Shown: positions 9,847 through 52,878, counted from the first letter of the stretch. The stretch: 64,000 nt of DNA from Dimorphilus gyrociliatus (GCA_904063045.1 CAJFCJ010000006.1:1461745-1525744); one strand, 5' to 3'. Made by a program: numbers and translations. Notes: generated by a model not told the origin, from the sequence alone.

Positions 9847-12139
9847 TTAGTTCTTTAATGTAATGATGGGATAGTGTTTATGTACAGTAAAGTCAAACAA
9901 AGGGCGTTCATACTCCTTTTTGCCTGTAGAAAGAACGCTCATGGCAACAATGTTATATTTACAAATTCGTAATAAAGCCGTAGCTTGTTCGGTTTGGTTG
10001 CTAGGAGGTTGTTCGATTAAAGCTTTAGCGTGTTGAAAGCCTTTGCAAGCGGCTTGAAAGAGATGTTCAGGTTCGGGCACAGGTTTATATCTATTTATGA
10101 ACATATAAAAAACTTATTGAAGAAAATGAATTTAAAAAAATTACCTTTGCAAATCGATTGTGTCTGTAAAATGACAATAAGCCATTGGCTGTGGACTGCT
10201 CAAAACTTGGAAAGGTGCAAATCTCCTTCTGAATCGAACTTCTTCACTATCAAAAGCTATAGAAGATCCGTCAGCCAGCTCTAATTTTTTCGCCCTTATA
10301 AACCCAAGTAATGCTTTCAAAAATGCATTGCATAGCATTTGATGAATTTGAGCTGTATGAACTTCTTTAGCATGAGGTTTACCCTTTTTCTTCTGTTGTC
10401 TTCTCACTTTTTTAGCACTTTTGCCACTTTGAGTTTCAATCATAGCTTCACTTTCCATTAGAAAATTATCTGCTCTGGAAAGAGTAGGAATCCACCAGGA
10501 GCAGTGTAACTCACTGATATACCAATAAATATAATAATATTCTTGAGGAGAATATAATTCCAATTCAAAACCAAGATATAAATAATTAAACATTGCTTTT
10601 AGGACATGATATAAAACCCAAGTCACAAAACAAACAACAGTTTGTCCCTGCGAATTTTTCATTAGTAATCTATGTAAATAGGTGTCTAGTTTATCGGCTT
10701 CAGCTTCCAAGTTAGCCAGCTCTTCGAATATATGCGCTAACTTCTCACGTTGCCTGGCTCTATTTTGACCAGATATATTAACAAGCTGTAATATAGTATT
10801 AGCTGCTCTCTGCAGAAAAGCATCACAGTATGCTCTTGCATCTGGATTGCTACCTATACTTGATTTAGGGACTAGGGCTGGTGGTGCTATAAAGTTCCGA
10901 ATCGTATCCCTAACAACATCAACAAGAGGTTCGTTTCCAAAGAATCTTCGATTGATTGGAAATACTAGTAAGTGTAAAAGTGACCTAGATAGGACACAAG
11001 GAGACAATTTGCTAAAGTCTTCGAAAAAATCCATGGCTTGATGAAGAAAGGTGCATTTTGTTACACCAGTTATAAACTTGAATCTCGTACACATATCCGA
11101 CAGATATTTCATAGTATCTTCGATCGACGTAATTTTTGCGTATCTCGGAAATGTTGAAGGTAACAATCTTTGATTAACTAAAGGTTCAAACCCCATAATC
11201 GTTGGGTAATCGTGTAAACCACATTCTCTTTCCTCCGGCTTAATTCCTAAGTGTATAGTGCTTTGCATAGACAGTAAAACATCAAGAATACCATTAAGAT
11301 ATTTTTCTATATCATCTACTCCACTGCATTTGTCTTTAGAGAAAGCCAACAGAGTTGCATATAGAAAACGAGTGAATTTAATACGTGAATAAATAGCACT
11401 ATAAAGTTCGTGCTGCTTTGCTCTTGTTTCGTTGTCTTCGCCTTTGTCTTTTGTACTCCTAACTTTCTTTGCAAACTAAAATTTAAGACATAAGATTTAA
11501 ATGCGATCAGAATATATTATTATTAAAATTTATTAAAACTGAAAATTGTGGGCCATTTACCTCATCTTCCACTTCCCGAAGAGAAGAAATAACTTTGGCA
11601 CTGGGTACTTCGCTTGCCATCTTGAAGCCATACGAAACAGATTGAAAATCCTCCTCCTCGAAAACGCTTGCCTTGTTTATACGATCCCTAATTAAATCGA
11701 CTGTCTTGAGTATGGCCGTGCAAAACGATTTTAAAGTTTTATCTTTTATAGCCTCTGGGTTATGCAGATACAAATTAGTGAAAACTGTTTGGGCTAGAGA
11801 ATGCCCTTCTAACCAAGTTACCACACAGGCGTACGTTGAATCAATAATACCGATTAGTTCTTCACTTTCCAGATTATCATCTTTTATGATATTGGCTTTC
11901 AAAGCTTCATCAAAATCATACACTTTACGCTTAACTTGATTACAAAGCATTCCAGCATCCATTTTCGGATCCATCATCTCGATAGCCGACATAGCTTCGA
12001 ATAAACCAAAATGAACATCGTGAACTAATTCCCCCACATTTAATTGTTGACATAATTCAAAAAAGTCCTTTGTTATATCTTTCCAATTACAATTCTTCTT
12101 CTCTTCCAGAGAAGGGCCATTATCATCGGTTTGCGACAT
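9847..12139 (-). CDS. NAA35: N-alpha-acetyltransferase 35, NatC auxiliary subunit (Mak10); exons 12139-11561, about 11478-10146, about 10090-9847
   Basis: FGLFEAMSAIEMMDPKMDAGM, WLEGHSLAQTVFTNLYLH, LGFELELYS.EYYYIYWY and C-terminal FDFTVHKHYPII are characteristic Mak10 motifs. Confidence 0.96.
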
Positions 12140-18873: not shown

Positions 18874-20431
18874 TATTCATTCAAACGCAGACATTTTTAA
18901 CCCGATTTTACAGGTGTAGAATTGTGTAGAGGCATTCCTTACATCTGCCGCAGTTTGTGTCTTGTTTCGGATTTTTTAAGTTCTATTGTTTTCCGGTGAA
19001 AGTGACGTCACTGTCCAGTGCGCTTTGGAGCGTAGCGACAGGTGTCGCTCAGGTTCGTTTAGCGGGCGCCAGTTGTTGGTCGGCTGTTGTGACGTCAACA
19101 TAGCGGATTTTTTATGCTTTACTTTGTAAACACTATGGATCGTTTCTTTACCCGTATATTTAATAGTAATTTACTCAGGTAAGTAAGGTGAATACTTCTG
19201 GTCTAGCTGTCGGCCGTCCGTCTGGTCTCTTGTGGTGGCAGAGTTTCCTATGAACATATCTAGCACCACATGAAATCAGTGCTGTCGGTTCGATCACAAC
19301 TGCAAAACGTACTGTTGAGTGTGAACAAGTTACGGATAATAGTTGATTAGTCTTCGTTGAAATACAAATGTGGCACGTTTGAATGGTTTAAGTAAGTATT
19401 TGAATAACATTCGATTAGGCCTGTGTGTACATAAGGCTCAGGACTTCTGAAGGAAAAGACAGTAAAAAAAACGCCACCTAGTGGTCGATGAAAGCTCTAA
19501 ACGGCGGGAATGTACGACAATCATTATAGTGCGTGGTTTAGGCGAAACCACACCCAATTGAGAAAACGTAATGCGATGACTGCTTTCTTATGGTGGTTAT
19601 GTATACTTATCGTAATAGCACCATATGAAATCAGGTCTTGCGCTACGATCAACGCGGTCAATAAACGCCTTTGTTGTTGGCATTGAGCAGCTTGTTGGGT
19701 AACTAGGCAGCGGCGGACCATAAGCTTTTTACGCAAATTGATCGCGTTTTGTCGACGTAGCGCTTTTAATTATTCATGTGGCTATATTTTCGCGTCTCTT
19801 TTACATGAAGTTGCCGATATGTTGATTGATTAATTTGTTAAAGTTTGATGATTTCAGAAACGAGATGAGGAAAAGCAGAAGAAGGCAGATCTTGCAAAAT
19901 CGTTACAGGACATATGCAGAAAATCCATAGGTAAGAAAATTTCAAAGCGCTTCATCGTTTTTATTGTGTTTTTCTGCTTCATATTTTTTATGGGTTTTAG
20001 AGGAGGATAAAAGGCGTAAATTTATCAAAAAAAGGGCTGAGAACTCAGCAATACCACGGAAACAAGACATTGTTCGAAATTCGTCAGGCAACGCGTCCAC
20101 CAAATCGAAGGAAACGGCCTCGTCACAAGTCGACGCTAAAATCGATCAAACGCCTTCTAGTTTGCCACCGCAAACTGACGCCGAATTGGAAGAATTACTC
20201 GACCGAGTAAGGCTAAGGGCGAAAACGACAATCGAGGAAGAAGAAGAAGACGAATATGCAGAAACACCGGATAGCATTGCCTGGTTCGCAAAGCAATTAT
20301 ATGGATTGATGGGAGAAGAAGCGGATTATTTTTTGCATCCGAAAATGGCGCAACGAGTCAGCAAGCCGGTTAATCCGAAATTGCACGCTCAAGGAGGTGA
20401 GTTGCCTGCCTTTCGATCGATAAAGACGTGA
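17027..20431 (+). CDS. Charged coiled-coil hypothetical protein (exons 17027-17102, 18074-18238, 19858-19930, 20001-20431; possible ATG exon 16077-16096); miR-29 host
   Basis: Phase-consistent GT-AG exons give ELIRQQEAQ/KALETYELWK...EIQ/KRDEEKQKK...SI/EEDKRRKF...; E/K/R-rich helical composition. Family not recognised. Confidence 0.55.
18840..18870. repeat. (TA)n microsatellite, representative of many (e.g. about 9340-9370, 30860-30890, 40590-40625, 54094-54130, 55960-55990, 58175-58217, 61572-61607)
   Basis: Directly visible. Confidence 0.95.
19003..19097. promoter_or_regulatory. Pair of palindromic CRE sites (TGACGTCA at 19003 and 19090) upstream of the miR-29 hairpins
   Basis: Two perfect 8-mers 87 nt apart, followed by a strong donor CAG|GTAAGT at 19178/19179. 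Confidence 0.5.
19219..19283 (+). ncRNA. mir-29: miR-29 family pre-miRNA, copy 1 (mature 3p about 19261-19282, UAGCACCACAUGAAAUCAGUG)
   Basis: The 3p arm differs from miR-29b UAGCACCAUUUGAAAUCAGUG only at nt 9-10. The upstream arm CTGGTCTCTTGTGGTGGCAGA (19222-19242) pairs with it to form a roughly 60-nt hairpin. Confidence 0.9.
19472..19484 (-). promoter_or_regulatory. CTCF-like motif (CCACTAGGTGGCG on minus) between the two miR-29 hairpins
   Basis: Near-perfect match to the bilaterian CTCF core CCASYAGRKGGCR. Confidence 0.55.
19578..19637 (+). ncRNA. mir-29: miR-29 family pre-miRNA, copy 2 (mature 3p about 19616-19637, UAGCACCAUAUGAAAUCAGGU)
   Basis: Same seed AGCACCA and GAAAUCAG 3' half. 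The 5p arm ACTGCTTTCTTATGGTGGTTAT (19579-19600) is complementary. Confidence 0.9.
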
Positions 20432-28532: not shown

Positions 28533-31120
28533 TCAGACGTCTCTGTAAGGAAAGAGTTTAGTGTAATATCGTGGGAGGAAATTAAGTATATGTCACAAAA
28601 AAAAAAAAAAATACTGCTGAAAATTAGTGCTTTTCAGTACATATTCGTAGGAGAGTGAGGGGGTGGAGAATGTTGGAAGGCGGTGAAGGAGAAGAATAAG
28701 AGAAATGGGTGGACACAAAAATTACGGACTTGGTACGAAAAAAATGACTTAGTACTAACGAAGCTTCGAGGTGAGAGTCGTGAAGTAAGCGTAGAACTTC
28801 CTTTGGTGATATCTTTCGCTTATGATCGTCGGTATGTAGACTAGCGGGAGTAAAAACGTTTGTTGACGAAATGAACGAGCTGGATGCTAATGAATGAGAT
28901 AACGTTGTTTTATCCTCTTCCCCTTTCCCATTCCATGAATAGCGTTTTTGGATAGCACATTCCGGTTTGGGCGGTTGATTTAAGTCATGAGTAGTACTGG
29001 CAGTCCAATAACGTTTATCTCTGGACAATCGTCGATGGTTTAATTTCGATTTCGTTTCTTCGTCTATGCAGTCCAAATCGGAAGATGAAGAACTGACGGA
29101 TAATCGATCGGTTGCGAAGACATGCCGTAGTTGATCTATCCTTGGTGAAAGTTGTTTGTTCCTGGCTCCACTCACAGTTGCTGCTCTTGACCTGATTTCT
29201 GTTTGTTCCACATGGCCGGATGAGGACGTGTCTAACAACTCCATACTCATACTGACATTATTTGAAAGTCTTTCTGCCGCTTTTTCTTCTAACGCAACCT
29301 GAGATAAAAGTTCTGTGGAACTAACCTTCTCACTAACAGGGTATTCCATAAGGCTAGAGTTTCTCCTCCCACTCCACAATTCTACATATGCTTTTTTGGC
29401 GTTCGTTATATCTTCGTACCATTTACTGTTGTTTGCAGTAAAAGTGTAGACACAATTAACACAACCAAACTCATTAATATATGCTAAAGAGAACATAGTA
29501 TCTTTGAGAAATATAGGCTTAACCAAGTCTAACCTCATGGGTGGCTTGATTACCCTAACTCTACTTTCCGCTTTTTTCGAGCGTTTCGCGACTAGAACGA
29601 GATCGGTGAATAGAAAGAGTATAATTTCTTGCGATTTTACGCTCACGCCTTCTTTCATCTTTAGATATCCTTCTTTGATTAGACGCCTCCTATAGTGTTC
29701 TCCGCAAACCGCCATAGGAGAAGAAATATCATATTTTAAGGCGTCTTGTAAATGAAAATACACTTCTTCCGGATGAGTGTCTATTAAATCGAAACTTTCT
29801 ATTCGTTGCGTAATATTAAGTAATTTGGCCTGTTGATCATGTATTTGTATCTGTTCATTTACTGAACTTACAAAACTCTTAATACGATTTAAAGTCAACC
29901 CTAATTTACGTTTGTCGCACTCATCGTCGGTACATTCCAATAATCTTTGTAGAAGTAAAACGTGCCGTGTTATATGTTGCATAGGACTGCTTAAATAACT
30001 AGCAACATCCAATTTGTTCAAGTTCGTATGACTATTCGCCCAGGTATAGAATTTCTGAAAGGCTGTATTCCTCTCGCGTTCCTCATTGATGTATTCCTTA
30101 CATTTTTCCATTTTAAGATTATATTGATATTCTTCTAAGAATAGATCTCCGAATTCGTACAATTCTTCCAAACTAGCTGAATTAACAGGTCTCTTACTCT
30201 CTCGTATTTTTCTTATAAAAGGCGATATGACGTCATTCCACCTCCTACAGCATTGTACATAGACGTCGTTTAGATTGAAAACGATTTTGTCAATATCAAC
30301 ACCTCCTAATAAATGTTCATTCGTCAAATGTCTTAACGGTCGTACGAATACGTCAACTATAATTTTTAATTTAAGAGCATAGTTCGCCTCGAAGTGTAAA
30401 ATTTCCCACACTACACTTTGCTGCTGGCGTTCGCTCTTTGATAGGCCTTCATCAGATATTACAGCATTCCATTCGGATTCTAATTCGATGGCTCCGGGAT
30501 CAAATTCCAACGATTCGCTACGTTTTGGTAAGCGTTTACCAAATTCAGTAAGGCGTCTGGTAAGGGCATCATCAATCCCCTGAGATCTTATTTTTAATGA
30601 CGGTGAACCTTCGTCGTCTGATTTACGATGCTTGTTGGTCTTTATAAAAAAAAGATAAAAAATTATTTAACTGAACCGAAAGCGTATAGCAAAGTAATAT
30701 AACAGCAGAAATCAATTTCTCAATGAAACAATAAGGAAAAAAGAACTGAAAGAATACTAAAAAAAGGCCAATTAATTAAATATATATAACATATATACTA
30801 TATATATATATACACATTTATATATATATATATACTGTATATATACATATGAATAAATAATTATATATATATATATATATATATATAACCATACGGATTA
30901 TATAATCTATTAAGATAGAGTTTACATTTCTATATTAGAAAAGTCATAAATATTTAAGACGACAATCTAAAACAAAAAATAATAATAGAAAAGAAGCTTT
31001 TCCTACTGTTTTAGGTCTTTCATTAACTTTTTGAACCTTTTTAGACGCCATACTTTCGTCAAAATCAACAAAAAATTGTAAGGCATCTCGCTGTAGTTTA
31101 GCAATATTCGTCGCCGACAT
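28533..31120 (-). CDS. DH-PH Rho guanine nucleotide exchange factor, PLEKHG5/6 (Syx)-like; exons 31120-31007, 30639-28760, 28542-28533
   Basis: DH reads QQSVVWEILHFEANY...PMQHITRHVLLL; PH reads RRLIKEGYLKMK...LFLFTDLVLVAK...IKPPMRLD. A terminal micro-exon gives ...LEASDV*, a class I PDZ ligand like PLEKHG5 SEV. Confidence 0.88.
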
Positions 31121-37067: not shown

Positions 37068-38641
37068 ATGAATAGAAGTGGAAATGAAACTAATTTGACA
37101 GATAGATCACTTCTTCCAAGAGAATTATTCTTTAACTCGGATAGTGCCGTCAGTATAATCGCTTATTCTTGCCTCTTCGTTGTCGCTGTTGTTGGAAATT
37201 TAACAGTATTTTGGACGCTGATACGGAAAAACAGGCGCAAGAAATCTCGTTTAAACCTCTTCATTCTACATTTGTGTATAGCAGATATGACTGTCACTTT
37301 CGTAATGATGCCTTTGGAAATAAGTTGGCATGCCACGGTTAGTTGGAAAGCCGGCGATATCGCATGCCGTATATTTATGTTTTTTCGAATATTTGGATTT
37401 TATCTCTCCAGTTTTATATTAGTAATAATCTCTTTGGATCGTTATTTTGCCATCGCTCAGCCTCTTAGAATACATGACGGACATAGTCGAAGTAAAATAT
37501 TATTATCATTTGCATGGGCTCTAAGTATTCTGGCTAGCTTTCCGCAAAGCATTATATTTCACACCGAGGAACATCCTGACCTGAAAGGTTATAAACAATG
37601 TGTAACATACAATTTCTATCCAACCAAATCTCATGAATTGGCTTACAATGTCTTCAACTACATTTTAATATATTTACTGCCATTATTGGTTATTGTTGCG
37701 TCGTACTCCTTAATAATTCTACATATATCAAGAAGAGCAAATGGAATAAATGTACAAGGTGCGGGTCAACAGCAAATTAGAAAGGCGAAAACAAAAACTC
37801 TAAAGTTAACAGTTGTTATTGGTAAGTGTATTCGTATTTTTTCCCCTTCTCTATGTTTTCTATTTCGCACTAGGCACTGCTTTGCCACCTTCAACCTTCT
37901 GATTCCCCTTTCCATTGCACCCTAACAATCAATTTTACAGTTAAACAACTCGCAATAATTTATACTTGTTTTACTATAAAAATTTCTTCAACTTCATGAC
38001 CAACAACTATTTAATCTTGTATTTAATTCAAAGCTACAAAGTTTTCTATAAATTTACTTTAAAAAGGAATTTCTTCCTTTCTATTTTTAATTAACAGTTT
38101 TAGCCTTCATCATTTGCTGGACTCCCTATTTCGTTATATGCGCTTGGTGGTGGGTTGATAGGTAAGTACCACTTAATCCCGTGAGGCTACGAGCATAGAA
38201 AACGATTTGTGTAAACTCTAATTGACAGGCAATCTGCAGAGAAGATCAACTTGAAACTGCAGCGTGGAATTTTCGTTTTTGCAGTGTCAAACAGTTGTGT
38301 TAACCCGATTATATACGGTGATAAATTTTTTCTTATTGATTATTTATTTAGATAATAATAAGTAATTTAAACGATAGAAGTTTTAATAAAAGCAACGAAG
38401 GATTTCTCATAATTCCTCTTTTTACTTGTATTCATAACAGATTAATTGTTTTTTTAACTTGTTGGTTACAGGCATGTTTACGAAAGCAGTTAGAAATGAG
38501 TTCAAAGGTAGGATGAGATGCTGCTTAAGAATATTTAGAAGTCGACGCCATCATAGGCAAAGTTTAACTCTAACGGCAGTTCGGAATGGTGAAATAAACA
38601 ATGTTCGAATGAGATCTCGAATACTACAAGACCACTCGTAA
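37068..38641 (+). CDS. GnRH/AKH/corazonin-superfamily peptide GPCR; exons 37068-37821, 38098-38161, 38229-38317, 38472-38641
   Basis: VGNLTV, LCIADMTVTFVMMPLEISWHATVSWKAGDIACR, ISLDRYFAI, EEHPDLKGYKQCVT, KAKTKTLKLTVVIVLAFIICWTPYF and SNSCVNPIIYG are typical of GnRH-type receptors. Confidence 0.9.
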
Positions 38642-40629: not shown

Positions 40630-41351
40630 CAATTATATGAATGATACAGGATAAATATTTCCTCTTATTATTACTAATAATGCCCTTTGAAGTGACGACT
40701 TTTTTCAAAACTCGGTTACTACGCAACTGAATCTGCTTGTAGCACCATATTTTTTTGTTGTTAAAATAAAAGAATAGCAAAAAATTTCACTTTAATTACA
40801 AAATTGTTTGCATGAAAATCAAACTTGCTGCAATTATATAATAAATAAGTATGTATATATATATATAGATATCAATAAATAGCATCAAACTATATTTCAG
40901 CTCTATTAATAGATCTATAAGAAGTAGAAAAAAACGGTTATTGAACAATCGTAAGGCTGAAACTGTTGGTCAAAAAAGGGACTTAAACTTTTTTGTTTTT
41001 TAAGGAACTTTAGTTTAGAGAGCACCGTATAAAAGAAAACAAAATAATTATATATACACTTATCAATACATGTATGATTTCAATACAGTGATAAAAATAA
41101 AATCATATTTTCTCTTTTGATTTCCTTTTGAATAAATATTTCATATTCGTATAGAACGTTTCATCTTTTTCCCCCTTTTTTTTCAGTTCTAAAGCTACCT
41201 CTTATCTTCTTTCCACCTCTTTTATAACTCTCTTTGTTTTTTACTTTACTTTACTTTATTCCCTCTTCAATCCTTTTTCTCCAAAAAATAGGATTTTGAC
41301 CTCTTTATTGATAAAAATAAGCAAGAATAATAACTATATTATGTATAAATA

Positions 41352-41433: not shown

Positions 41434-42723
41434 TTACAAATCGTATAAAGAACACCAAAAATTTTCACCACATTCCGAAAATGTTAGTTTATGTAAGCAT
41501 TCCCCGAATAATTTGTTTGTTATCTTTTTACATTTCTTGACTTGAATATGCAAAGATAATTGTGTCTTGTTAACTGGACTAAATACAAACATTTCGTTAA
41601 AATATGTTGTTTGTTCATTTTGTTTTTGATTGAATGTACGTCGTTTTTCCAAATGAAATTTTGTATCGTCATCTAACAGTCGAATTTGAACGAAAAATTC
41701 TGTATATGAGAAAGGAAAGGAAAAAGTAATGGGTGCAAGTTAGTTCCCAGATGCGTAATCTATGTAAATGTCATATCAAATTCGTTGAATGTTACTAACC
41801 GCTTCTCTTCCTTCTACCGAGCGTTTCCAACCTAATAACGGAAACAGTAAGCTCCTGGTCGAAAATAATGTTGATTAATAGCAAACCAGAAGGAAGCCTG
41901 CCATTTTCAAACGATTGAAAATCTATTGGAATACTAGACGATAATGAACTCTCGCTGACGTCATCGGGTACTGTAAGAAAAAGACAGTATATATTTTAGA
42001 AATAGAGAAAAGCTTCCAGAGAACTTCACTTTTAAACGTGATAAAAGAACTTACAAGGTTTTCTATTGATAAAAAAGGTGAGTGAGGCAGATAGGAGATA
42101 AATAGTGAGAGAGAGAGAGAGAGAGAGAGACGAAGAAAGAAGAATAATGATGATGACGATGAGGAGAAGTGGAGAAATTTGGAGAGAGAGAGAGAGAAAC
42201 ACACACAAACACTTATAGACATACAGAAGTTATTTTTACTGCGCGTTCAGGACTTGTAAGCTGTTTTGAAAAGCATGCAAAGTTTTAAAAAAAGCATTCT
42301 ATTATATGCATATATTATCTTTAAAATATATCAAAGAAATAAGCAAATAAACTAGATCTAAAAAGAAGATATACAGTATATACAGTAAGTTATAATTATC
42401 ATACTTTTACTTTTATAAATAAAGACTCTCATAAAATAATTGCTTTTATACTAATCATCAAAAAGACAAACATTCTGTCAATGCTACCAATTTAGGTATT
42501 TTTATGAAGAAGTCGTTATGTAAGTTTTTTTTCTATTTGCAAAATTAACTAGAAGAAAAGTATTACTTAAGATATTTCCTCAGGGCTACATCTCTCCTTT
42601 CATTTTATCCTTTTATATTATTTTTCTAGTTCTTTATTTAAGAATAGAATTTTTGTTTATAACTCTTGGACTTTTTCAAATCCAGTATTAACATTCCGTA
42701 TATACATATACTCTATACTGTAG

Positions 42724-42755
<32 letters not shown>

Positions 42756-43013
42756 TATATATTTAGATCTACAGCATTGATACAAGATTTTTGCACTCTG
42801 TTAAAATTTGGAGGCAAAATCTTTAATTTAGAAAACATGCTTTCTACTTGCTTATACAGGTGAAATATATAAAAGATTTACAAACAGAAATTCATAAAAA
42901 TTGTAAAAATAAGAAATCTTTAAGTAATTGCTTGATAACAGTAAGAATTAATCATAATAAAGAATTATCAGTGCTTAAACTTTGAGAAGAAAGAGAAAAG
43001 ACAAAGAAAAAAG

Positions 43014-43055
<42 letters not shown>

Positions 43056-46000
43056 AGGAAGGAAAGAAATTAGACATATTTATAGATGTATTATTCTATA
43101 ATTAGAAATAATTAAAATTTAAGGTAAAGACTCTTTACTTAAATACGATGGTGTATAAATATAATAGATAGAAAATATACAACTACTAATAAAAAGGTGA
43201 ATAAAGATATATAGTTAAGAAAAATTAATATACAGTATATATATATATATATGCTGTATAAAGAAGAAAAACAACAACAACGAGGTGTACCGGTTTAATG
43301 TTTTTTTTTTTGGCTTATAGGATAGTTTTGTTACTAGATTTTTATGAGGATTAACGCGCTTTGTGTGCAGTTATCATCCTTTCATCACTTTCTTCACATC
43401 TGATTAGGACAAACGTGAAGGCGTAATAGGGAAAATGGTATTATACAAAATAATATAAATACTTGTTTACATATTATATACATTATATACAAGAATTGTA
43501 AAGATTGTTTATCTTACAAAATTCTCCTTATTTATTCAAAGTTAAAGTACTATAGCCTTATTTTAATTAATAGATGATAAAATAGAGGACTTTTATTTAT
43601 ACTAACATATACTGTATATATATAGTTTATATGGAGAATACGAAATCTAGACAAACTCAAATATTGTTTGTCATATGTTTTTCTGTTAATACATAAAAGA
43701 GATAAGCACATAATAGTCAACTATGATAAATTGTAAATCTGCTATAGGGAAAGAGAAATTCTTTTAGAACTTATATTTATATATAATTCATTATAATAAT
43801 GCTTTAGCTAAACTTACAAGCAACAATTTTGTTTTTTAATCTGGTCTCGTTACTGCTTCGCCTTTGCACTAAATTAAAATTTTCTTTTAACCCTTTAAAC
43901 GGATGAACTGGGGGATAATATCAGCTCTTAATGTATCAGTAAAGGCTTCTATATGTCGTTTTTAGTTTTAACTTTATCTTGATAATCTTTTTAAAGAAAG
44001 CTAGTGTCTCTGCTTTTCCGGTATCATCTGTACAGTGGCCCTACAAGAAAATTACTCTATCCTCTTTAAAGTTTTTATCAATTATATGGCGAGTTATCGG
44101 GGTTAATAAGCATGAGTTTGTTTTAAATATAAGGAAAGAAAAAACTCATTTTTTTTTAATTTGCCTGATGATTGATGGTCAGGTGCAGCTTCTATTCATT
44201 GACTTTTGTTATTCACAATATAGGGAAATACTTTAACCTTCTTCATACCAACAGATGATATAGTTATTATGTGATAATCTCTTATATCTAATCACAAAAA
44301 CAATAATGACAAACAAAATTTCAGTATGTCTTAAATACGTTTCTTATTTATTATTAATATGTTATTTCGTCCTAGTTTTTCCCATCAAAGTTTTATTTTC
44401 TAATCATCCTATTACTTTTGTTAATTTATTTACTAACCTGACAAGGTTGGACCTAAGAAACCAGCTAAAGTCGTCCCCATCCTTTCGACGAAATTTTCTG
44501 TAAATTGATATTTAAATTAGGAATTTGCTTCATTTAATTAATAGTAGAAGGCTGTATGGTGCCACATATATTAGATACGTTTAATTTGAATTTTTTTAAT
44601 TAAGCGAAAGTTACGAAGATACATGATTGATTAAATAAAAGGGTATTATATATTTACAGTATATATATACTGTATATAACACCTATAATTATAATACTGT
44701 TGATTGTTGATTAACTTATAAGAGTTCTTACTTTCTGCGGGTTGTTGAGGGTCTGGTTTCAAGTCCTGGGGTTGAAGGGGTCTTCTACCGTGTGCAGGAC
44801 TAAAATTTGCATTTGATGGTATTGATACAGATTGAGTCGATTGGGTAGGCACCGTTGAAGCCTGAGAGGCAGCAGCAGCAGCAGCGGCGGCGGCGGCTGC
44901 AGCGGCTGCAGCGGCAGCAGCCGCTTTTGCTGCCGGAGCGTTACTGGCAAAAGCTGGATTCATAGGCGGTTGGTGACGATTTGTTCTAGAAACAAGTGTT
45001 GGAGTCGGTTTGTGAGGCTCGTGTGGCTGTTGAGATTGCTGAGGTGGAGCACCGTGTGCTGGATTGAACGTTCTCTCTTGAGATTTTGATCTTGTTAAAT
45101 GCTGTGGCATTTGGGGGGGGTTAAGACCTGGTGATCTCTCTCGAATTTGAATATCACTGCGACTCCTTTCCCTACTACGGTCTCTCATCATTCTATCATC
45201 TTCGTACCTAGACGACGTGTGATCGTGAGAGCGAGATCGTCGTTCCCGATGATCCATCGGTGCCGAAGGGGACCTACTTCTATGCGTGTTCAAGACAGGA
45301 TCTTTGTAAGGCGTATGTCTTCTAAGAGGCCTTTCTTCGTAGTAACGATCGTCGTGCTCATAATTATTATAGCGTCTACTATTATTATAATAATCATCTT
45401 CGTAGTCATGATGCTGAGTGGGTTGAGAAGGATGATTAGAATGATGCCCTTGAGAGGATCGCGGCCTTTCACGCTCTTGATAGCCATTCCGCTTTCTCGC
45501 TTTTTTCTGTTCATACTGCTCTTCTGGTACTGTTTGATAATTACGGTCGTCATAGACCGCACTTGCGTCAGATCGGCGATGATTCCTCCTCCTGTCATAA
45601 TATTCCCCTCCTTCATTATATTCATCTTCAAAATGTGTTCGCCTTCGGCTGACTTCTTCACTTCTGTGCGGTACGTTGTCGTACGTAGACTGAGATTCAA
45701 CTTTTCGAACATCCTCCTGCTTAGAATGTCGCGGAGAAGAAGTAGAATGGCTCTTGCTTCTCTTCTTTTCTTTCTTCGGCTCTGGGGGCGATGGATCCAG
45801 CGGCAAGTCATTTGGATTCTTCTTCTGTTCGTGTAGTTTGTACCAGTGGGGCTTGTTGTCCAAATAGACTTTATCTAATTATACGAAAAACATTTATTAC
45901 TGCGAAATTACGAGTAAATAAAAAATATCCCACTTGATAAAGGAAGGACAACTTCCCCAATAAAGTCGTCACTCTTAAATCGGTCGTGGTCATATACCGC

Positions 46001-49000
46001 CACCTCTAGGGTATAGCCAGCAGCTTTCGTCTTTTTTTTGTCTAAATTCATAAACATAATCGTTTGGTGCCATTGGGGATCGAGAGTCTTGGGAATTACT
46101 TTAGACTTTTGCTTGCAATCCTCTCGACTGTAATAGAAATAAGTAGTAATGAAACAGAAATAATTATAATAATTCATTTAACTCATGCTTACTCTAGACC
46201 ATAGAGCATGAACTTGACGAAAGGATCAGATAGTCCATTAGAATCTTTGCAAGGCAGTCGGCGTGCTTCTATTAAATGAATATTCAAGGTATTATCGTAA
46301 TCGTCGAAACTTAGCTGAAGACGAATATCGCCTAGATCTTGTTCCTTATCCTTCGACCTGTGAACAACTGGAGCCTGCTCCGCTTCTATATTCTTCTGTC
46401 GGGCAGCAGATATTGTTGTCGTTGAGGTTGTCGTTGTGGTTGATGTAACAGTTTTGCTGGTGTCCACATTTGTTGCAGCGACAGTATTAGACATTTCACT
46501 CTGAGTTACAGTTGTAGTCGAATTAGTTGATGTTACTGGTTCTACGTACGTGACTTTAGCGGCGGTTTCCACTTTCTTAGTTTCCGGATTGTTCATAATT
46601 TCTGATTTAGATATTGTAGATGGATTCTCTTGATTTGACACGGAGGTACTGGTGGGAGTTGAGATCTCAGATTCCTGAATTCCTCGTAGTTGAGCCGCTA
46701 ATTCATTTGGATCAATACCTTTGTCCTCGGTAATAATAAGGGTCGGTTGATTGGTTCCATTAGAATCCGAGATCGTTTCCGATTTCGCTTGATTATTGTG
46801 TTTAATAGGTCCGAATTGTTGAAGGAAATCTAAATTATCATATGACGAATGCTCGCTTTTTGAAGCGTGATGATCAACCTTTACTGTGCTGACATTGCTC
46901 CTCTTGGAACTCGTTTCGGATGACTGAATAGAACTTGCTGTAACTATAGGCACAACTGGTGTGTTCTTAATTGAACTTTTAGGCCTAATCACTAGCTCAA
47001 TTTCACCATTATCATTTAAAAGTGATATTAAGGCATGTACTTCCTCGTAGGTCTTACCCGTTAATGGAATACCATTCCATTCAAGAATCTGATCTCCCTC
47101 TTGCAATTCACCGTGGAGTTGATCAGCTGCTCCTCCTTTGTAAATAGCAGCCACATAAGCTCCAACCTGACCAGCTGGTCTACCAGATATTTGTTTACCT
47201 CCGACAATTTTCATGCCAATTCCATAGCCTTTGTTGGAACGATCCTTCGGATCTCTCATTAATAAGATTCTTTTTGTTGGGAATGGATACTGAATGCGAC
47301 CTACTGAATTGGAATATTCGAGAAGAATGGGCGGATTCGAATTCCTGAAATTGGAACGAGACTTTATTGTAGATAGACTATCGTCCGCAAAATGATCAAG
47401 AAGGTTCTCGTCTGAGTTAAATAAATCATCCATTTCGGCATAGCCGAGCAGATCTTCCCTGATATATTTATCTATTTCGTCACTCAGAGGACGGCTGCCT
47501 ATATTCCTTAGCTTGGTTCTGGATCGTTTCGTAACGTCGTCAAGAATAGGCATAGCAGGCGTAACATCAGGTGACGGTTCAGTTTCGGTGGGAATAGGTG
47601 AGAATTCCGGATAGGATTCTATTGCGACCATCTTCTTTCCCCTACCATATAAATGAGGCTGCGATTGTGAAGGAGGAAGAAAAATATCTGAGTATAAATC
47701 ATTATATAATAAGGCGTCTTCCAGTTCGCTTGCGGGTGAATGGGCCTTGTGTGCCAAATATTCACTGGCGCTATAACTTCGAGAAGTCGAAGTTCTGACT
47801 GAAGAGGCAACGTTAATTGGAGTTGGATAAGCTGCAGGCATGGCCGGACTCCCCGTCGCTGGGATTTGAGGGCAAGCTGCTAGCAGGTATTTAGAGCGAT
47901 AGTCATAATACGGATCTCGACGGCATACGTGTTGTTGATAGCGCTTCCTGATTTGATTATATTCCAAAGGATTCATACTTGCCGATTCAGTAAGACGCTT
48001 TAGCTCCATTTGTAATTGTACATTTTCATCCAATTCCCGTTTCCTCTTCTCTATTTCCAATTTAAGCAAGTGTCTTTTCTCTTCTTTTCTCCTTAAATCA
48101 TCCTCTTCTCCTATAAATGCTTTTCGGAATGGTATTGAAGTTTCCGACCGACTACTAGTCATCGGTCTGGTAAACAATGTCTGAGCATAAGTTAATCCAG
48201 TCATATCAAAGTTTAAATCACGTTGTAAAGCAGCTTCAATATCTGCATTTTCGTCAACCGGAGAGATCTTTGACATAGTTGGGTCACTACTTTGCCTTTT
48301 GTGTAAAGCTCTCCGCTCTCTAGCCGATAGATTAGCTTGATTTAGAAGGCTCAGCTGCTTTTCGCTAGGACCAAGTACTTTAGGTTGCTTTTTAGCCTCT
48401 TTGGCCTTCATATCTTCTAATTGTCTCTCTAATAGATGAATTTCAACTTGTTCATCTAGCTGCAGTCTTCTGGAAGCCGTGGCTATTTGCAGCTCTTCTT
48501 TAAGCCGCTGCTTTAGTTGTCTTACATGTAATGGCACTGTAACACCTTTTATATTTACTGTTTCAATTGTTTTCAATTCACCCGGTCTCAATTTAGGAGA
48601 TTTCCTTAATAATTCTTTAGGCGTTTCGAAATTCTCCTTTAATTTGGAATTACTTGAGTTGATTCTAATATTTTCCGCGATAGGTGGTGTCGAAATACGA
48701 CTAGAGTTTCCCGATTCGGGTGCTGGAATGTCTAAACTTTCGCTTTTTATAAGTGTTCTAGGCGATAAATCGCCCCGGCTCACTGTACTAGAAGAATCTA
48801 AGGACGTAGATCTCTTTTCCTGCCATCTTTGCCTAGATTTATGCTTTATTGATGCTACGGTGACTGGTTGAACATTTGCAGGCGTTGGAGGTAGCTTTCG
48901 GCGAGCTCTTTTTTGATTATTGCTATTCGTTTGACTGACCTGAATTTTCAGCATCGTTGGTAAAAGGGTGGATGAAAGGAAAAGAAAAAAAAGCGTTATT

Positions 49001-52000
49001 AGTAAGATATCAGTAAAAGAAACAAATTTGGTACAGAAACAAGTGAAAAACGAATGTTCAAGGATATAAACATTACGTCATTCGGCACAATGAAAAAGTA
49101 ATCAAATTTTGTACGATAATCAGATAAAACGGTGTGGTATTTCGGATACAACGGTGCTTATATTCGGCACAACATGTGACACTCGTTTATATCATACCAG
49201 CGTCTGTGGCCTACTAACTACAGTAGGCGATTGGGGACGCGGCGGAGAGGTTTGTCCAGCAGGTGGCGTAATAGGATACGTATAGCCGTGATCCTCCTTA
49301 ATTTGAACCTGACTACGCGTACTCCGCTCCGTATCGGGTGTAATTGGGGATTTCAATACATTATATGAAAATGTTTGGCTTTCGTCTTCCGAAGGCCTTA
49401 AAGATAAAACGTTCATCTGCATTCCTCCACCTTTACTGACCTCTTTAGTGGGCGATGTGCACAGAGCACTTATATTGTCGAAGTTTGGATGTCTTTTAAT
49501 CGAGCTTCTGGGCTTCTGCTCTGCTAACATCATTTCTTGCTCAAGGCGTTCAATGGACGGTGAAACGTCAATAATTGGTGATAAATCCGTTACTGGTGAC
49601 CAATCCGGTGGTGGTTTCATCTTCGTTTGAGAGTCGTCTTTCTTGCTAGCCACTTTTACTTCGTCAACTACTTCATAATAATTTGGAGATGGTGGAGACG
49701 CACGATCGGGCGAAACGTCTAAGATGCCACGGTCATCAATGATACCCACCGAACGTTTGGGCTGTTCTTGACGCAATGTTGTAGGAGAGACGGATTTATT
49801 TGTCATGTTTGCAGTATCGCTTGCTACTGTTGCAGCATATGATGCTAAATCAAGAGCTTTAGCGGGTTTTGGTGGAACTTTATCTAAAAGTAAAGCTTCT
49901 CCTTGTGTATCCTCTCTAATACGGTTTGCTTTAGCGTTAATCTGTTCGATTTCATCGCAAGGACCATCTAGCTCGTATGGATCGAAGAAAGCATCGGTCC
50001 TGGATAAGGGTCTAGACGGGGGCGACATATCGGATATGGAAAACGTAAATCTCGAGTCCCTGGGTGATATCGGCGGTGACATTAGTCTGGGAGGTGACGA
50101 ATGAGGTGGACTATCTCTATATCGCTTCCAGTTAGGACTGCGGGGAGGCGTTAATGGTGATTTAGCAGGACTTTTCGATCGTTCCTTATAACGTTTCTGT
50201 GCCTCGTATTCGTTCTTTGATTTTCGAACCTTTTGTTCGATCGGCTTTCTATATTGATCAGCTTCCTCTTGATCGAAAGTGAGATTTTTCGGACGGTGCT
50301 TATGGTACACTTGACCGTCATCTTCCGCTTCACGTTTCATAGATTTGACTGATTCCGAACTTTCTGAGTCACTCCGTGACGTTTGTGGTGGACCTAAACA
50401 ACAAGGTTAATTCATTTCTCACATTATCAAATTATTCATTATAAAAGTATTATATATAAAGAAACTTAAGCTATTTGTGCTCAAATATATTATATCGTCT
50501 ATATTTATATAATGCTAATTATATGTACTGTATGCTGCTCATAAATTAATATAAACATAGGCGTATACAGATAATGATAATCATATTAATCATATTAATA
50601 AGCGGGTAAACTATCTGGTGTAACTATTCTGTATTCATTTCCCCCTATGCTCGCCTAGAAATGAATAATTAAACAGGCAAAGCCTATTCGCCTATGAATA
50701 TTTCATAAACGCAATTACCTTTTGTTCGAACTTGCGGTGACGAGTCTCGCGGATCGTTGTACGTTAATCCGTTCGTTCTATCGTATTTCCGTTGCTGTTG
50801 TAGCAATTGTTGCTGATATTGCTGTTGTAGCTGTTGGGTCATATGCTGTTGCTGCATTTGCTGCTGATATTGTTGTTGTAGCTGTAGGGGCATTTGTTGT
50901 TGTTGTTGTTGTAGTTGCTGCTGCATTTGCTGTTGCATTTGCTGCTGCATTTGCTGCTGACCTTGCTGTTGTGGCTGTTGAGGCAACATTTGTGGTTGCA
51001 CTTGTTGATATTGCTGTTGTAGGGGTTGGGACATCTGTTGTTGTTGCTGTTGTTGTTGCTGGTGTTGATGTTGAGGATGTTGAGTGTGTTGAGAATGTTG
51101 GGGATGTTGTACATGCTGCGCATGTTGAGCATATTGAGTATGCTGAGGATGCTGAGGATGCTGAGGATGCTGAGGATGCTGAGGATGCTGAGGATGTTGA
51201 CTATGTTGAGGATGTTGAGGATGCTGAGCATGTTGTGGATGTTGAGGATGTTGTGTTTGTTGTGCAAGTTGCTGATGTTGTTGGTGTTGCTGGTGTTGAT
51301 ATTGCTGATGTTGTAAGTGTTGCGGATGTTGTGATTGTTGCTGTCTTTGACGACGTTGATGTTCTTCTTCATAATCCCTTCTTGTTGTGGGCATTTGTTT
51401 ATCGGGTGTCTGACTAAATTGCTCAGGATCTGGTACGGGCATCCTCTTCGGCCGTTGATTACGATCCTGCCCCCTACGAATTTTCTCCTCGTCTACCAAC
51501 GACTCCCTAGGGGGTTGTCGGTGTTGTGGGAAATTTGCTTGATTCTCCTTATTATGTTCCGAATAGATCGGTTGATCTCTGCGCCTAGGATCGTTTTGGT
51601 CCTCTTTTTTCAATTCTAATCCCGTGACGTGGGGTAAAGTGGGCCCACTTCTCCCGTGATACCATGCTCCTGAACTCTTTATCAATTCCTTCTTCTTTAT
51701 GCAAACAGTACAAGTCCATTCCCTTTGCTGTATAAATAATAAGGGAGAAAGTATGATTAAAGCAATTTTTTCAATAAACTAGCAAACGGCCGGCGATATA
51801 TTGCGGTACCGCATTGCTGTGTCGCCGGTGTACGTGATCTGCAAAAATATATATAAAAAAAGAGTACTAGGATGTCTAGTTTTAGGCCTCAAAGATTACG
51901 ATATTATTTGCTCATTCATTTGGTCGTTGTTTTCTCTGGTTGTTCCCTTTCCCTATTCGACTGATTCCCTCTCAAAGAAAACCTAATTACGTTAGCCAGC

Positions 52001-52878
52001 TTGCATAGTTAAACAGGCGTATTTTTTTTTATCAATACAGACATTTTTTGCCGCTACTTACCGAACTGATTGGAGATAATTCGAAACGACCGCATTTGTT
52101 ACAAACGTTCTTCCGGCATTCCGAACACGTCCGTCCCTTGGCCGAGTCGACTATATTCGTCTCAGAGCATACGGGACATTTCAGTTTCTCCTCTTCAGTA
52201 CCCAAAGAGGCACGACGCTCTACCGATGCAGCTAGTACTGTGTAATCCTGCTCTAAATTCCTGTATTGGATACAAATGAATTGGACTATAATTAACTTAT
52301 TGACTTTACGACGGTGAAAATAATCGATAAGGAACATATTGTACTATAAACGAGATGACATCACACACACGCACTTTACGTTCTATCGATTCCTTATCGA
52401 TTATTTATGCGCGGATGCCCCGCTCCGAAGAAGAGAAGCGTTAATCTGGGCAAAAATCGTACGGGAAATGAGGAGATTGGTAGTGCTAGCTATTTGCTTA
52501 TTTATTGCCTATTATTCGAACATATTACCGAATTCGACTTGTCTCGTCGTTCTGCATCTGTGTTGCCTTTGCCATCACCTGAGCTATTTGGGCTCGTTCC
52601 TCCGTGCTGAGGTGGCTAAGATCCACTTCCGGTGGTTCGAGCGGAGTATGTTGACCGGAACAAGGTGCCGAAACGGCGTTTCTTTTGGGGGCAACAAACT
52701 CCTGTTCCATGCGCTGAAATCGGTTAGCCTGAGGAGTAGTTCGTCCTGACAGGCTACCGGAGGTCCTTGGGCTTTGGAATGTGCGGGGAGCGGAAACTGA
52801 GACAATCCTGGCCATAGGTTCTGATTGTGGCTGGTTCTCCTCGTCGATCATCAAGAAACTCTTCAATCCCCTAAACAT
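41434..52878 (-). CDS. PCLO: Piccolo-like presynaptic active-zone scaffold (RIM/Piccolo/Fife family); exons 52878-52529, 52260-52062, 51727-50719, 50393-49198, 48939-46193, 46127-45934, 45873-44732, 44497-44438, 41970-41800, 41699-41434
   Basis: A Rab-binding helix (EVDLSHLSTEERAQIAQVM) precedes a FYVE-type Zn finger (CPVC...CSEC...CNKC...WTCTVC...SSGAW). The PDZ reads GIGMKIVGGK...GAYVAAI...QILEWNGIPLTGKTYEEV (Piccolo-type). C2A reads DSNGLSDPF/YDHDRF.DDFIG...DNKPHWYKL. A terminal C2 reads GLLLINIIFDQELTV...YFNEMFVF...KLFGE...W. All junctions are phase-consistent. Confidence 0.85.
44871..44925 (-). repeat. GCN trinucleotide tract encoding poly-alanine in the Piccolo-like protein
   Basis: Mixed GCT/GCC/GCA codons giving about 18 consecutive Ala. 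Confidence 0.9.
51141..51194 (-). repeat. Six perfect 9-bp tandem units (plus strand TGCTGAGGA) encoding (QHP)n, inside a larger Q/H/P-rich tract at about 50810-51350
   Basis: Directly visible tandem array within exon 3 of the Piccolo-like gene. Confidence 0.95.

Follow-up and report, generated by a model that had tools for sequence, protein, structure and literature searches.

Drosophila Fife and C. elegans Clarinet (CLA-1) are protostome active-zone scaffolds related to Piccolo and RIM that carry a PDZ and a pair of C2 domains, together with a Zn finger in Fife (PMC5223599, PMC5728718). Orvis et al. (2022) reported that Aplysia possesses a RIM and a Piccolo gene as well as a Fife-like one, that many arthropods have Piccolo and many insect groups have lost it, and that Piccolo and Fife originated before the protostome-deuterostome split (PMC9282427). 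The loss from many insect groups accounts for the earlier view of protostome Piccolo. In the annelid Capitella teleta, piccolo is a marker of a neural cluster according to a 2025 preprint (PMC12637686). Thus, invertebrate Piccolo, even annelid Piccolo, was already known. Here, we describe a computational analysis of a 64,000-nucleotide stretch of the genome of the miniature annelid Dimorphilus gyrociliatus (GCA_904063045.1, CAJFCJ010000006.1:1461745-1525744), which we refer to as the window and number from its first letter. The minus strand of the window from 52878 to 41434 carries what we identify, with a probability of about 0.85, as the annelid's one Piccolo (PCLO)-type gene, belonging to the RIM superfamily of presynaptic active-zone scaffolds and encoding a protein of about 2,444 residues. 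An initial annotation of this sequence had proposed a fairly complete Piccolo orthologue of significance for active-zone evolution, on the premise that the protostome relatives of Piccolo are the divergent Fife and Clarinet proteins. The identification is upheld by the domain scores described below, whereas the novelty was overstated and the premise is outdated, as Piccolo occurs in most protostomes beside RIM and Fife (PMC9282427). The family is known, and the gene is unexceptional within it.

The minus-strand interval is a genuine ten-exon gene, and all of the features of the gene described here lie on that strand. Its coding sequence of 7,335 nt comprises 2,444 codons and a stop, with no internal stop when the frame is traced through the exons one at a time, carrying the phase from each to the next. 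All nine introns are of the GT-AG type, and the phases are consistent at every junction. The gene spans 11.4 kb of AT-rich eukaryotic DNA, and its introns are mostly short: intron 8 measures 2,467 nt and the remaining introns 59-334 nt; the median intron of the D. gyrociliatus genome is 66 bp (PMC7854359). The GC content of the exons is 0.41-0.53 versus 0.22-0.37 for the introns, the exception being exon 10. A genomic contig from a close relative (L001; Logan, run SRR23372228) has 82% nucleotide identity to the window over 53261-44431, which shows that the locus is conserved in a closely related worm. Profile, structure and tree analyses were run per exon or per domain, on single exons, and genome-wide searches covered the assembly of 77.9 Mb in 349 contigs.

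The PDZ domain (47292-46984) is encoded within exon 5 (48939-46193), which runs from a region conserved among spiralians through the PDZ and a Ser/Thr-rich linker to the start of the first C2 domain (C2A) at about 46335; Pfam recognizes both the PDZ and this beginning of a C2. This PDZ scores 98.6 bits (E 3e-27) against the human Piccolo PDZ, 1ujd, versus 48-52 bits against the PDZs of RIM1 and RIM2 (52 for RIM1), bearing out the Piccolo-type PDZ of the initial annotation. It is 53% identical to the vertebrate Piccolo PDZ, and the likeness includes the N-terminal extension of the Piccolo type (YPFPTKRILLMRD against YIFPHARIKITRD). An exhaustive HMMER search with the PDZ returned two classes of match: multi-PDZ proteins, for which the scores of several domains are summed, and single-PDZ proteins that are 46-73% identical to the query. 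Names were retrieved for 30 single-PDZ matches among the best 150, and every single-PDZ match that was named or placed is a Piccolo-type protein; the lowest match listed has 85 bits, and the PDZ of the RIM gene of the same genome has 44 bits against this query. The named proteins come from Lingula (one fragment called 'protein piccolo-like') and scallop, from flukes, from deuterostome invertebrates (amphioxus 'PCLO', Saccoglossus, Acanthaster and a crinoid), from ecdysozoans (Trichinella 'Protein piccolo', spiders 'protein piccolo', horseshoe crabs and lobster 'protein piccolo-like') and from vertebrates (lamprey, and the Piccolo of platypus, caecilian and eel). A word-based homologue search found 'Protein piccolo' in the annelid Ridgeia, in Taenia and in Trichuris; when the query was the PDZ only, it found mostly multi-PDZ proteins. 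In a PDZ tree the gene adjoins its close relative and lies nearest to the Ridgeia, scallop and Lingula sequences.

The similarity to invertebrate Piccolo-type proteins extends well beyond the PDZ. Proteins of this kind are its closest known counterparts, for example Lingula anatina LOC106175070 (XP_013412341, 2,244 aa), the scallop Mizuhopecten yessoensis LOC110457754 (2,232 aa), the 'Protein piccolo' of Ridgeia piscesae and the Piccolo that Orvis et al. (2022) described in Aplysia. Exons 1-7 find matches in the same order in Lingula, scallop and amphioxus PCLO, and are thus collinear with proteins named Piccolo. Exon 5 aligns across about 800 residues, with the scallop protein collinear over residues 133-917 and the Lingula protein collinear as well, and the head of exon 7 is similar to the Bulinus and Biomphalaria orthologues. 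These invertebrate proteins share with the window gene an N-terminal helix, one Zn finger (with matches to FYVE_2 and zf-piccolo), a motif in exon 4, a PDZ that is 69-73% identical, a C2A with five Asp positions and a similar length. Exon 4 (50393-49198) is Ser/Pro-rich and has no Pfam match. Its conserved motif, PDWSPVTDLSPIIDVSPSIERLEQEMM (49623-49528), falls within the longer scallop and Lingula alignments. The Piccolo-type proteins of chelicerates have the same motif at 70-77% identity; it is surrounded by low-complexity sequence and belongs to no Pfam family. Motifs in common with spiralian orthologues thus break up the long low-complexity parts of the protein.

The C2A domain is divided among three exons. 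The end of exon 5 encodes ligand loop 1, KDSNGLSD; exon 6 (46127-45934) encodes the centre of the domain with ligand loop 3, YDHDRFKSDD, and scores 55.6 bits against Pfam C2; and exon 7 (45874-44732) supplies the final strand (KVYLDNKPHWYKL, 45872-45834) and continues into an Arg/Ser/Glu-rich region without a Pfam match and a poly-Ala run. Exon 6 has 52 bits to the Piccolo C2A, 1rh8, versus 35-37 bits to the C2A domains of rat and fly RIM. The tail of exon 5 (RLPCKDSNGLSDPFVKF) and exon 6 (VYDHDRFKSDDFIG) match platypus Piccolo (XP_028933106, 4,997 aa; RD..SDPFVKV and WDYDRFSSNDFLG) column by column; therefore, all five Asp positions are kept. The initial annotation had counted five acidic ligand positions in DSNGLSD and YDHDRFKSDD, and these do fall on the Asp columns of platypus Piccolo. 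We aligned the pieces of the domain as separate fragments against 24 relatives, among them platypus, eel, amphioxus, Lingula, scallop and Ridgeia. Loop 1 (KD...SDP) and loop 3 (YDHD...DD) occupy the five columns that hold Asp in vertebrate Piccolo, and the five Asp are present in the aligned spiralian, flatworm, echinoderm and amphioxus domains and in three of the four vertebrates. The deviating one is lamprey, which lacks two Asp and reads RN and NH in loops 1 and 3, respectively. In chelicerate, crustacean, insect and nematode C2A domains several Asp are lost, as in WNYDIYRPNEF and WSYDRFKQNTF. Within the aligned sequences this pattern is consistent with a loss of Asp ligands in Ecdysozoa, and among these members, as judged from their sequences, a five-Asp C2A is the usual state outside that group. 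From the retained ligand positions we infer that the C2A probably binds Ca2+. In other details the domain differs among family members: a conserved stretch that reads LLPGR...ENKRRT in invertebrate Piccolo is altered to MLYGLDREDCKQKS in the window gene, and a 9-residue insert in the C2A of platypus and eel Piccolo is not found there.

The N-terminal module is encoded by exons 1-3. Exon 1 (52878-52529) opens with the ATG at 52878, encodes a conserved helix, PPEVDLSHLSTEERAQIAQVMAKA (approximately 52635-52564), and ends in CG followed by the donor GTAATA. Exon 2 (52260-52062) encodes the first half of the Zn finger (CPVC...CSECRKNVCNKCG), which scores 26.7 bits against zf-piccolo (profile positions 2-36 of 60), 21.3 against FYVE_2 and 17.1 against RIM2a_ZnF. 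The Pfam cut-off for zf-piccolo is 30 bits; an intron interrupts the finger, and these scores are those of exon 2 alone. The W-C-x2-C that is missing from exon 2, containing the last Cys pair of the finger, is provided by exon 3 (51727-50719), the start of which matches FYVE_2 profile positions 93-115 (E 0.004). Exon 2 is the one zf-piccolo match in the whole genome. The Lingula, amphioxus and Saccoglossus orthologues exceed the zf-piccolo cut-off, and for FYVE_2, zf-piccolo, PDZ and C2 alike full-length orthologues score above the Pfam thresholds. The helix of exon 1 resembles that of the RIM gene of the same genome (PPLPDLSHLTEAERKIIESVL), and it is also found at the N-termini of Piccolo-type proteins of amphioxus, Lingula, Saccoglossus, Acanthaster and chelicerates. 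The second half of the finger is followed in exon 3 by an SGAW motif (QREWTCTVCIKKKELIKSSGAWYHG, the two together spanning 51727-51653), which has counterparts in amphioxus (SSGAWYQS) and a crinoid (SSGSWYHR), and then by Gln/His/Pro-rich low-complexity sequence. A long Gln-rich and HPQ-repeat coding stretch within it (50839-51372) is 79% identical in the close relative, with 82 gap positions; because so many indels separate the two, the length of this repeat evolves fast.

With its helix, one Zn finger and SGAWYxG, the N-terminus has a FYVE_2 layout of the Rab-binding type, as in RIM and rabphilin. The gene does not show the two Zn fingers and giant size of vertebrate Piccolo and Bassoon, having one finger and 2,444 codons; these are traits of the vertebrate lineage, and the invertebrate members checked also lack them. 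The window gene thus resembles vertebrate Piccolo/Aczonin (PCLO; platypus Piccolo and the structures 1ujd and 1rh8 for PDZ and C2A) in its Zn finger, which scores closest to zf-piccolo, in the same five Asp of C2A and in the C-terminal order PDZ-C2A-C2B, with the C2B a proposed one, and differs from the vertebrate protein, which is at least twice as long, has two or more Zn fingers and lacks the SGAW motif. The complete domain layout of the initial annotation is therefore right as to the presence of a Zn finger, a PDZ and a C2A, and needs correction in that there is one finger and not two, in that the N-terminal module is RIM/rabphilin-like, and in that the second C2 domain (C2B) is weakly detectable.

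The N-terminal helix (DLSHLSTEER), the SGAW motif and the order of Zn finger, PDZ and two C2 domains are all shared with RIM (UNC-10; RIM1/2) and would speak for the window gene being itself the RIM orthologue. A genome-wide PDZ search identified a second locus, on contig C11 (997600-1007200), that contains an N-terminal helix, a RIM2a-type Zn finger and a PDZ, and then C2A and a well-conserved C2B within 3 kb. The PDZ of this locus has 105 bits to RIM2 versus 40 to Piccolo, and its Zn-finger exon has 64 bits to RIM2a_ZnF, compared with 17 for the window gene. The C11 locus is the RIM orthologue, and therefore the window gene is not RIM; it has neither a RIM-type Zn finger nor a RIM-type PDZ, the latter scoring 52 bits to RIM versus 98.6 to Piccolo. 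It also keeps the Asp ligands of C2A that, according to the initial annotation, RIM C2A lacks. The likeness to RIM, which also extends to an LGP motif ahead of C2B, is that of members of one superfamily, whereas the separate RIM locus has its own type of Zn finger and PDZ and a conserved C2B (54 bits to the Piccolo C2B profile). RIM identity is refuted by these reciprocal domain scores, leaving it a probability close to nil. We assign the window gene to the Piccolo type rather than RIM because three domains tested separately favor Piccolo, because the scores of the C11 RIM gene are the reverse, and because the nearest relatives of the window gene include proteins named Piccolo.

A closer contender is that the gene is a spiralian orthologue of Fife and not Piccolo proper. 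Orvis et al. (2022) reported a smaller, Piccolo/RIM-related Fife family beside Piccolo in molluscs (PMC9282427), and a protein of 2,444 residues with a single Zn finger is far from the 5,000-residue Piccolo of vertebrates. Genome-wide domain searches found no third locus that combines Zn finger, PDZ and C2 domains; therefore, no separate Fife-like gene is seen at the sensitivity of these searches, and with one Piccolo/Fife-type locus found in the genome the choice of name would depend on a tree. The PDZ, however, is 50-55% identical to vertebrate Piccolo PDZs, the top matches that carry a name from their source are called Piccolo, and no Drosophila protein occurs among the 30 named PDZ matches of the best 150. 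All five Asp of C2A are kept, whereas both C2 domains of Drosophila Fife have been described as non-canonical (PMC5223599). Several points nevertheless weigh against our identification. The label Piccolo as opposed to Fife depends on domain scores, on the canonical C2A and on the names of the nearest relatives; the PDZ tree has a basal polytomy, with its sole RIM row on a very long branch; and we infer expression and every splice junction from the sequence. On balance, we regard a Fife orthologue as improbable and retain the assignment to Piccolo.

The 3' end of the gene requires separate consideration. The initial annotation had placed a degenerate terminal C2 domain on two exons, at 41970-41800 and 41699-41434, which are exons 9 and 10 of our model. 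They follow microexon 8 (44497-44438), which consists of 60 nt encoding NFVERMGTTLAGFLGPTLS and is entered and left in phase 1. Exon 9 (acceptor tttttcttacag, donor GTTAGT) encodes a linker and the proposed first strands of the degenerate C2B (LLLINIIFDQELTVSVIRLETLGRRKRS), and exon 10 encodes the remainder, which lacks the acidic ligand positions, and the TAA at 41436-41434. Both exons have canonical AG/GT borders and are entered in phase 1, fitting the phase-1 end of exon 8. The acceptor of exon 9 is strong, and its GC content is 0.42 versus 0.26 for the intron; it lacks its own start codon. Microexon 8 is 85% identical and gap-free in the relative's contig, versus 60% for the flanking intron, and it carries an LGP motif similar to that in the linker before C2B in the RIM gene of the same genome (KLGPSQLVG), in amphioxus (ELGPGQLMDP) and in Acanthaster (DLGPGQIIDP). 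A C2-type W-x-x-L terminus closes the frame; next come the stop and, approximately 125 nt beyond it, the polyadenylation signal AATAAA (41304-41309, minus strand) read from the sequence. With a profile built from eight deuterostome Piccolo C2B domains, exon 10 ranks first of 1,444 open reading frame (ORF) pieces of the window (15.3 bits, E 0.0013), and with hhalign it aligns in the correct register (FNEMF on FNE.F, LFGE on LIGE) at E 4e-4 and 34% probability. We conclude that exons 9 and 10 probably represent a real, spliced and degenerate C2B. Of the claim of a split terminal C2 domain, the splice sites, phase, open frame and profile signal of exon 10 thus stand, whereas the signal is below threshold and exon 9 gives none.

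Against such a domain, it may be argued that the gene ends before C2B and that exons 9 and 10 are a chance open frame or an unspliced, decayed remnant, with the transcript terminating at or near 43461-43371 or by read-through past exon 8. Much of the evidence on the C2B itself tells in this direction. Exon 10 alone has 20.8 bits to Pfam C2 (E 4.7e-4, profile positions 26-91), below the cut-off of 22 bits, and its 15 bits to the C2B profile compare with 11 bits for a noise match in the window's NAA35 gene; that match (11319-11516) was rejected, as it belongs to the NAA35/Mak10 gene. Vertebrate Piccolo C2B, which is well conserved, has about 255 bits to its own profile. Exon 9 alone gave no profile signal; given this and the sub-threshold score of exon 10, the term degenerate is fitting. 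A phmmer search of exon 10 against PDB sequences yielded no match, and the genome-wide search with the C2B profile recovered the RIM C2B (54 bits) and other C2 genes, not exon 10. The GC content of exon 10, 0.28, is intron-like, the intron ahead of exon 9 is 2.47 kb long versus 59-334 nt elsewhere, and by our own estimate an open frame of about 100 codons, of which approximately one is expected per window, is not rare in DNA so rich in AT. Furthermore, no protostome Piccolo-type protein of the compared set has a modelled C2B: Lingula, scallop and the other spiralian models end soon after C2A in unrelated tails, whereas the window locus has its candidate C2B exons 2.5 kb downstream. The AlphaFold model of exon 10 alone, although its predicted local distance difference test (pLDDT) score of 37.5 may be counted on the same side, is uninformative, and the word-based homologue search with exon 10, which found no candidate, is uninformative either way. 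Set against these points, two independent profiles select exon 10 in the correct register, strand, order and phase fit, both exons have strong splice sites, exon 9 has an exon-like GC content, no start of its own and an LGP linker ahead of it, and the frame closes on a W-x-x-L-type C2 end, a stop and AATAAA. We therefore consider an end of the gene before C2B unlikely, and prefer the reading in which exons 9 and 10 form a degenerate C2B.

Both types of 3' end may exist. Within intron 8, a 93-bp block at 43371-43461 is 86% identical to L001:10189-10279, and the other parts of the intron do not align. The block (cag, then ATGTGAAG...GGATGA, minus strand) is phase-compatible: entered from exon 8 in phase 1, it encodes DVKKVMKG and a stop. 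It is a candidate alternative last exon that would give an isoform without C2B, and isoforms with and without the domain may both be made. We put forward, as a speculation that is itself doubtful, that the worm keeps a vestigial, Ca2+-independent C2B and chooses between it and the conserved 9-codon last exon at 43461-43371. Vertebrate Piccolo is made as isoforms with and without C2B.

The proposed functions of the protein are modelled on its vertebrate, fly and worm relatives. It would be located at active zones as a presynaptic scaffold, where the N-terminal module may contact Rab-GTP on vesicles, or Munc13-type partners and priming factors, and the PDZ may bind a C-terminal peptide ligand. 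The C2A could act as a low-affinity Ca2+/phospholipid switch, and the basic, ligand-less C2B as a Ca2+-independent protein-protein module; the C2 domains of Fife make protein contacts with the C2B of RIM (PMC5223599). The net result would be the organization of vesicles near release sites.

Intron 1 of the gene (52261-52528) is 97% identical to the relative's contig, compared with 86-88% for the flanking exons. A search of the gene, including this highly conserved intron, against Rfam found no match. The intron may be a regulatory element; ATAC-seq peaks have been reported in larger-than-usual introns of D. gyrociliatus (PMC7854359). Elsewhere, the window contains the gene of the NatC subunit NAA35/Mak10 (10141-12139, minus strand), a mir-29 precursor confirmed by Rfam (19217-19285, plus strand), a RhoGEF gene with a PH domain (28624-30510, minus strand) and a rhodopsin-family GPCR gene (37068-37925, plus strand).

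What this locus contributes is a clean and compact model of the Piccolo gene of one invertebrate, a miniature annelid. The published view that Piccolo predates the protostome-deuterostome split (Orvis et al., 2022) is unchanged by it. In the sequences compared, non-vertebrate Piccolo has an N-terminus that resembles a Rab-binding module of the RIM/rabphilin type. A possible C2B of protostome Piccolo and possible alternative 3' ends are a point of some interest: if the proposed choice between a vestigial C2B and a short last exon were true, then, with the isoforms of vertebrates, a switch between forms with and without C2B would, along with the N-terminus of the Rab-binding type, go back to Piccolo's ancestor in early bilaterians.

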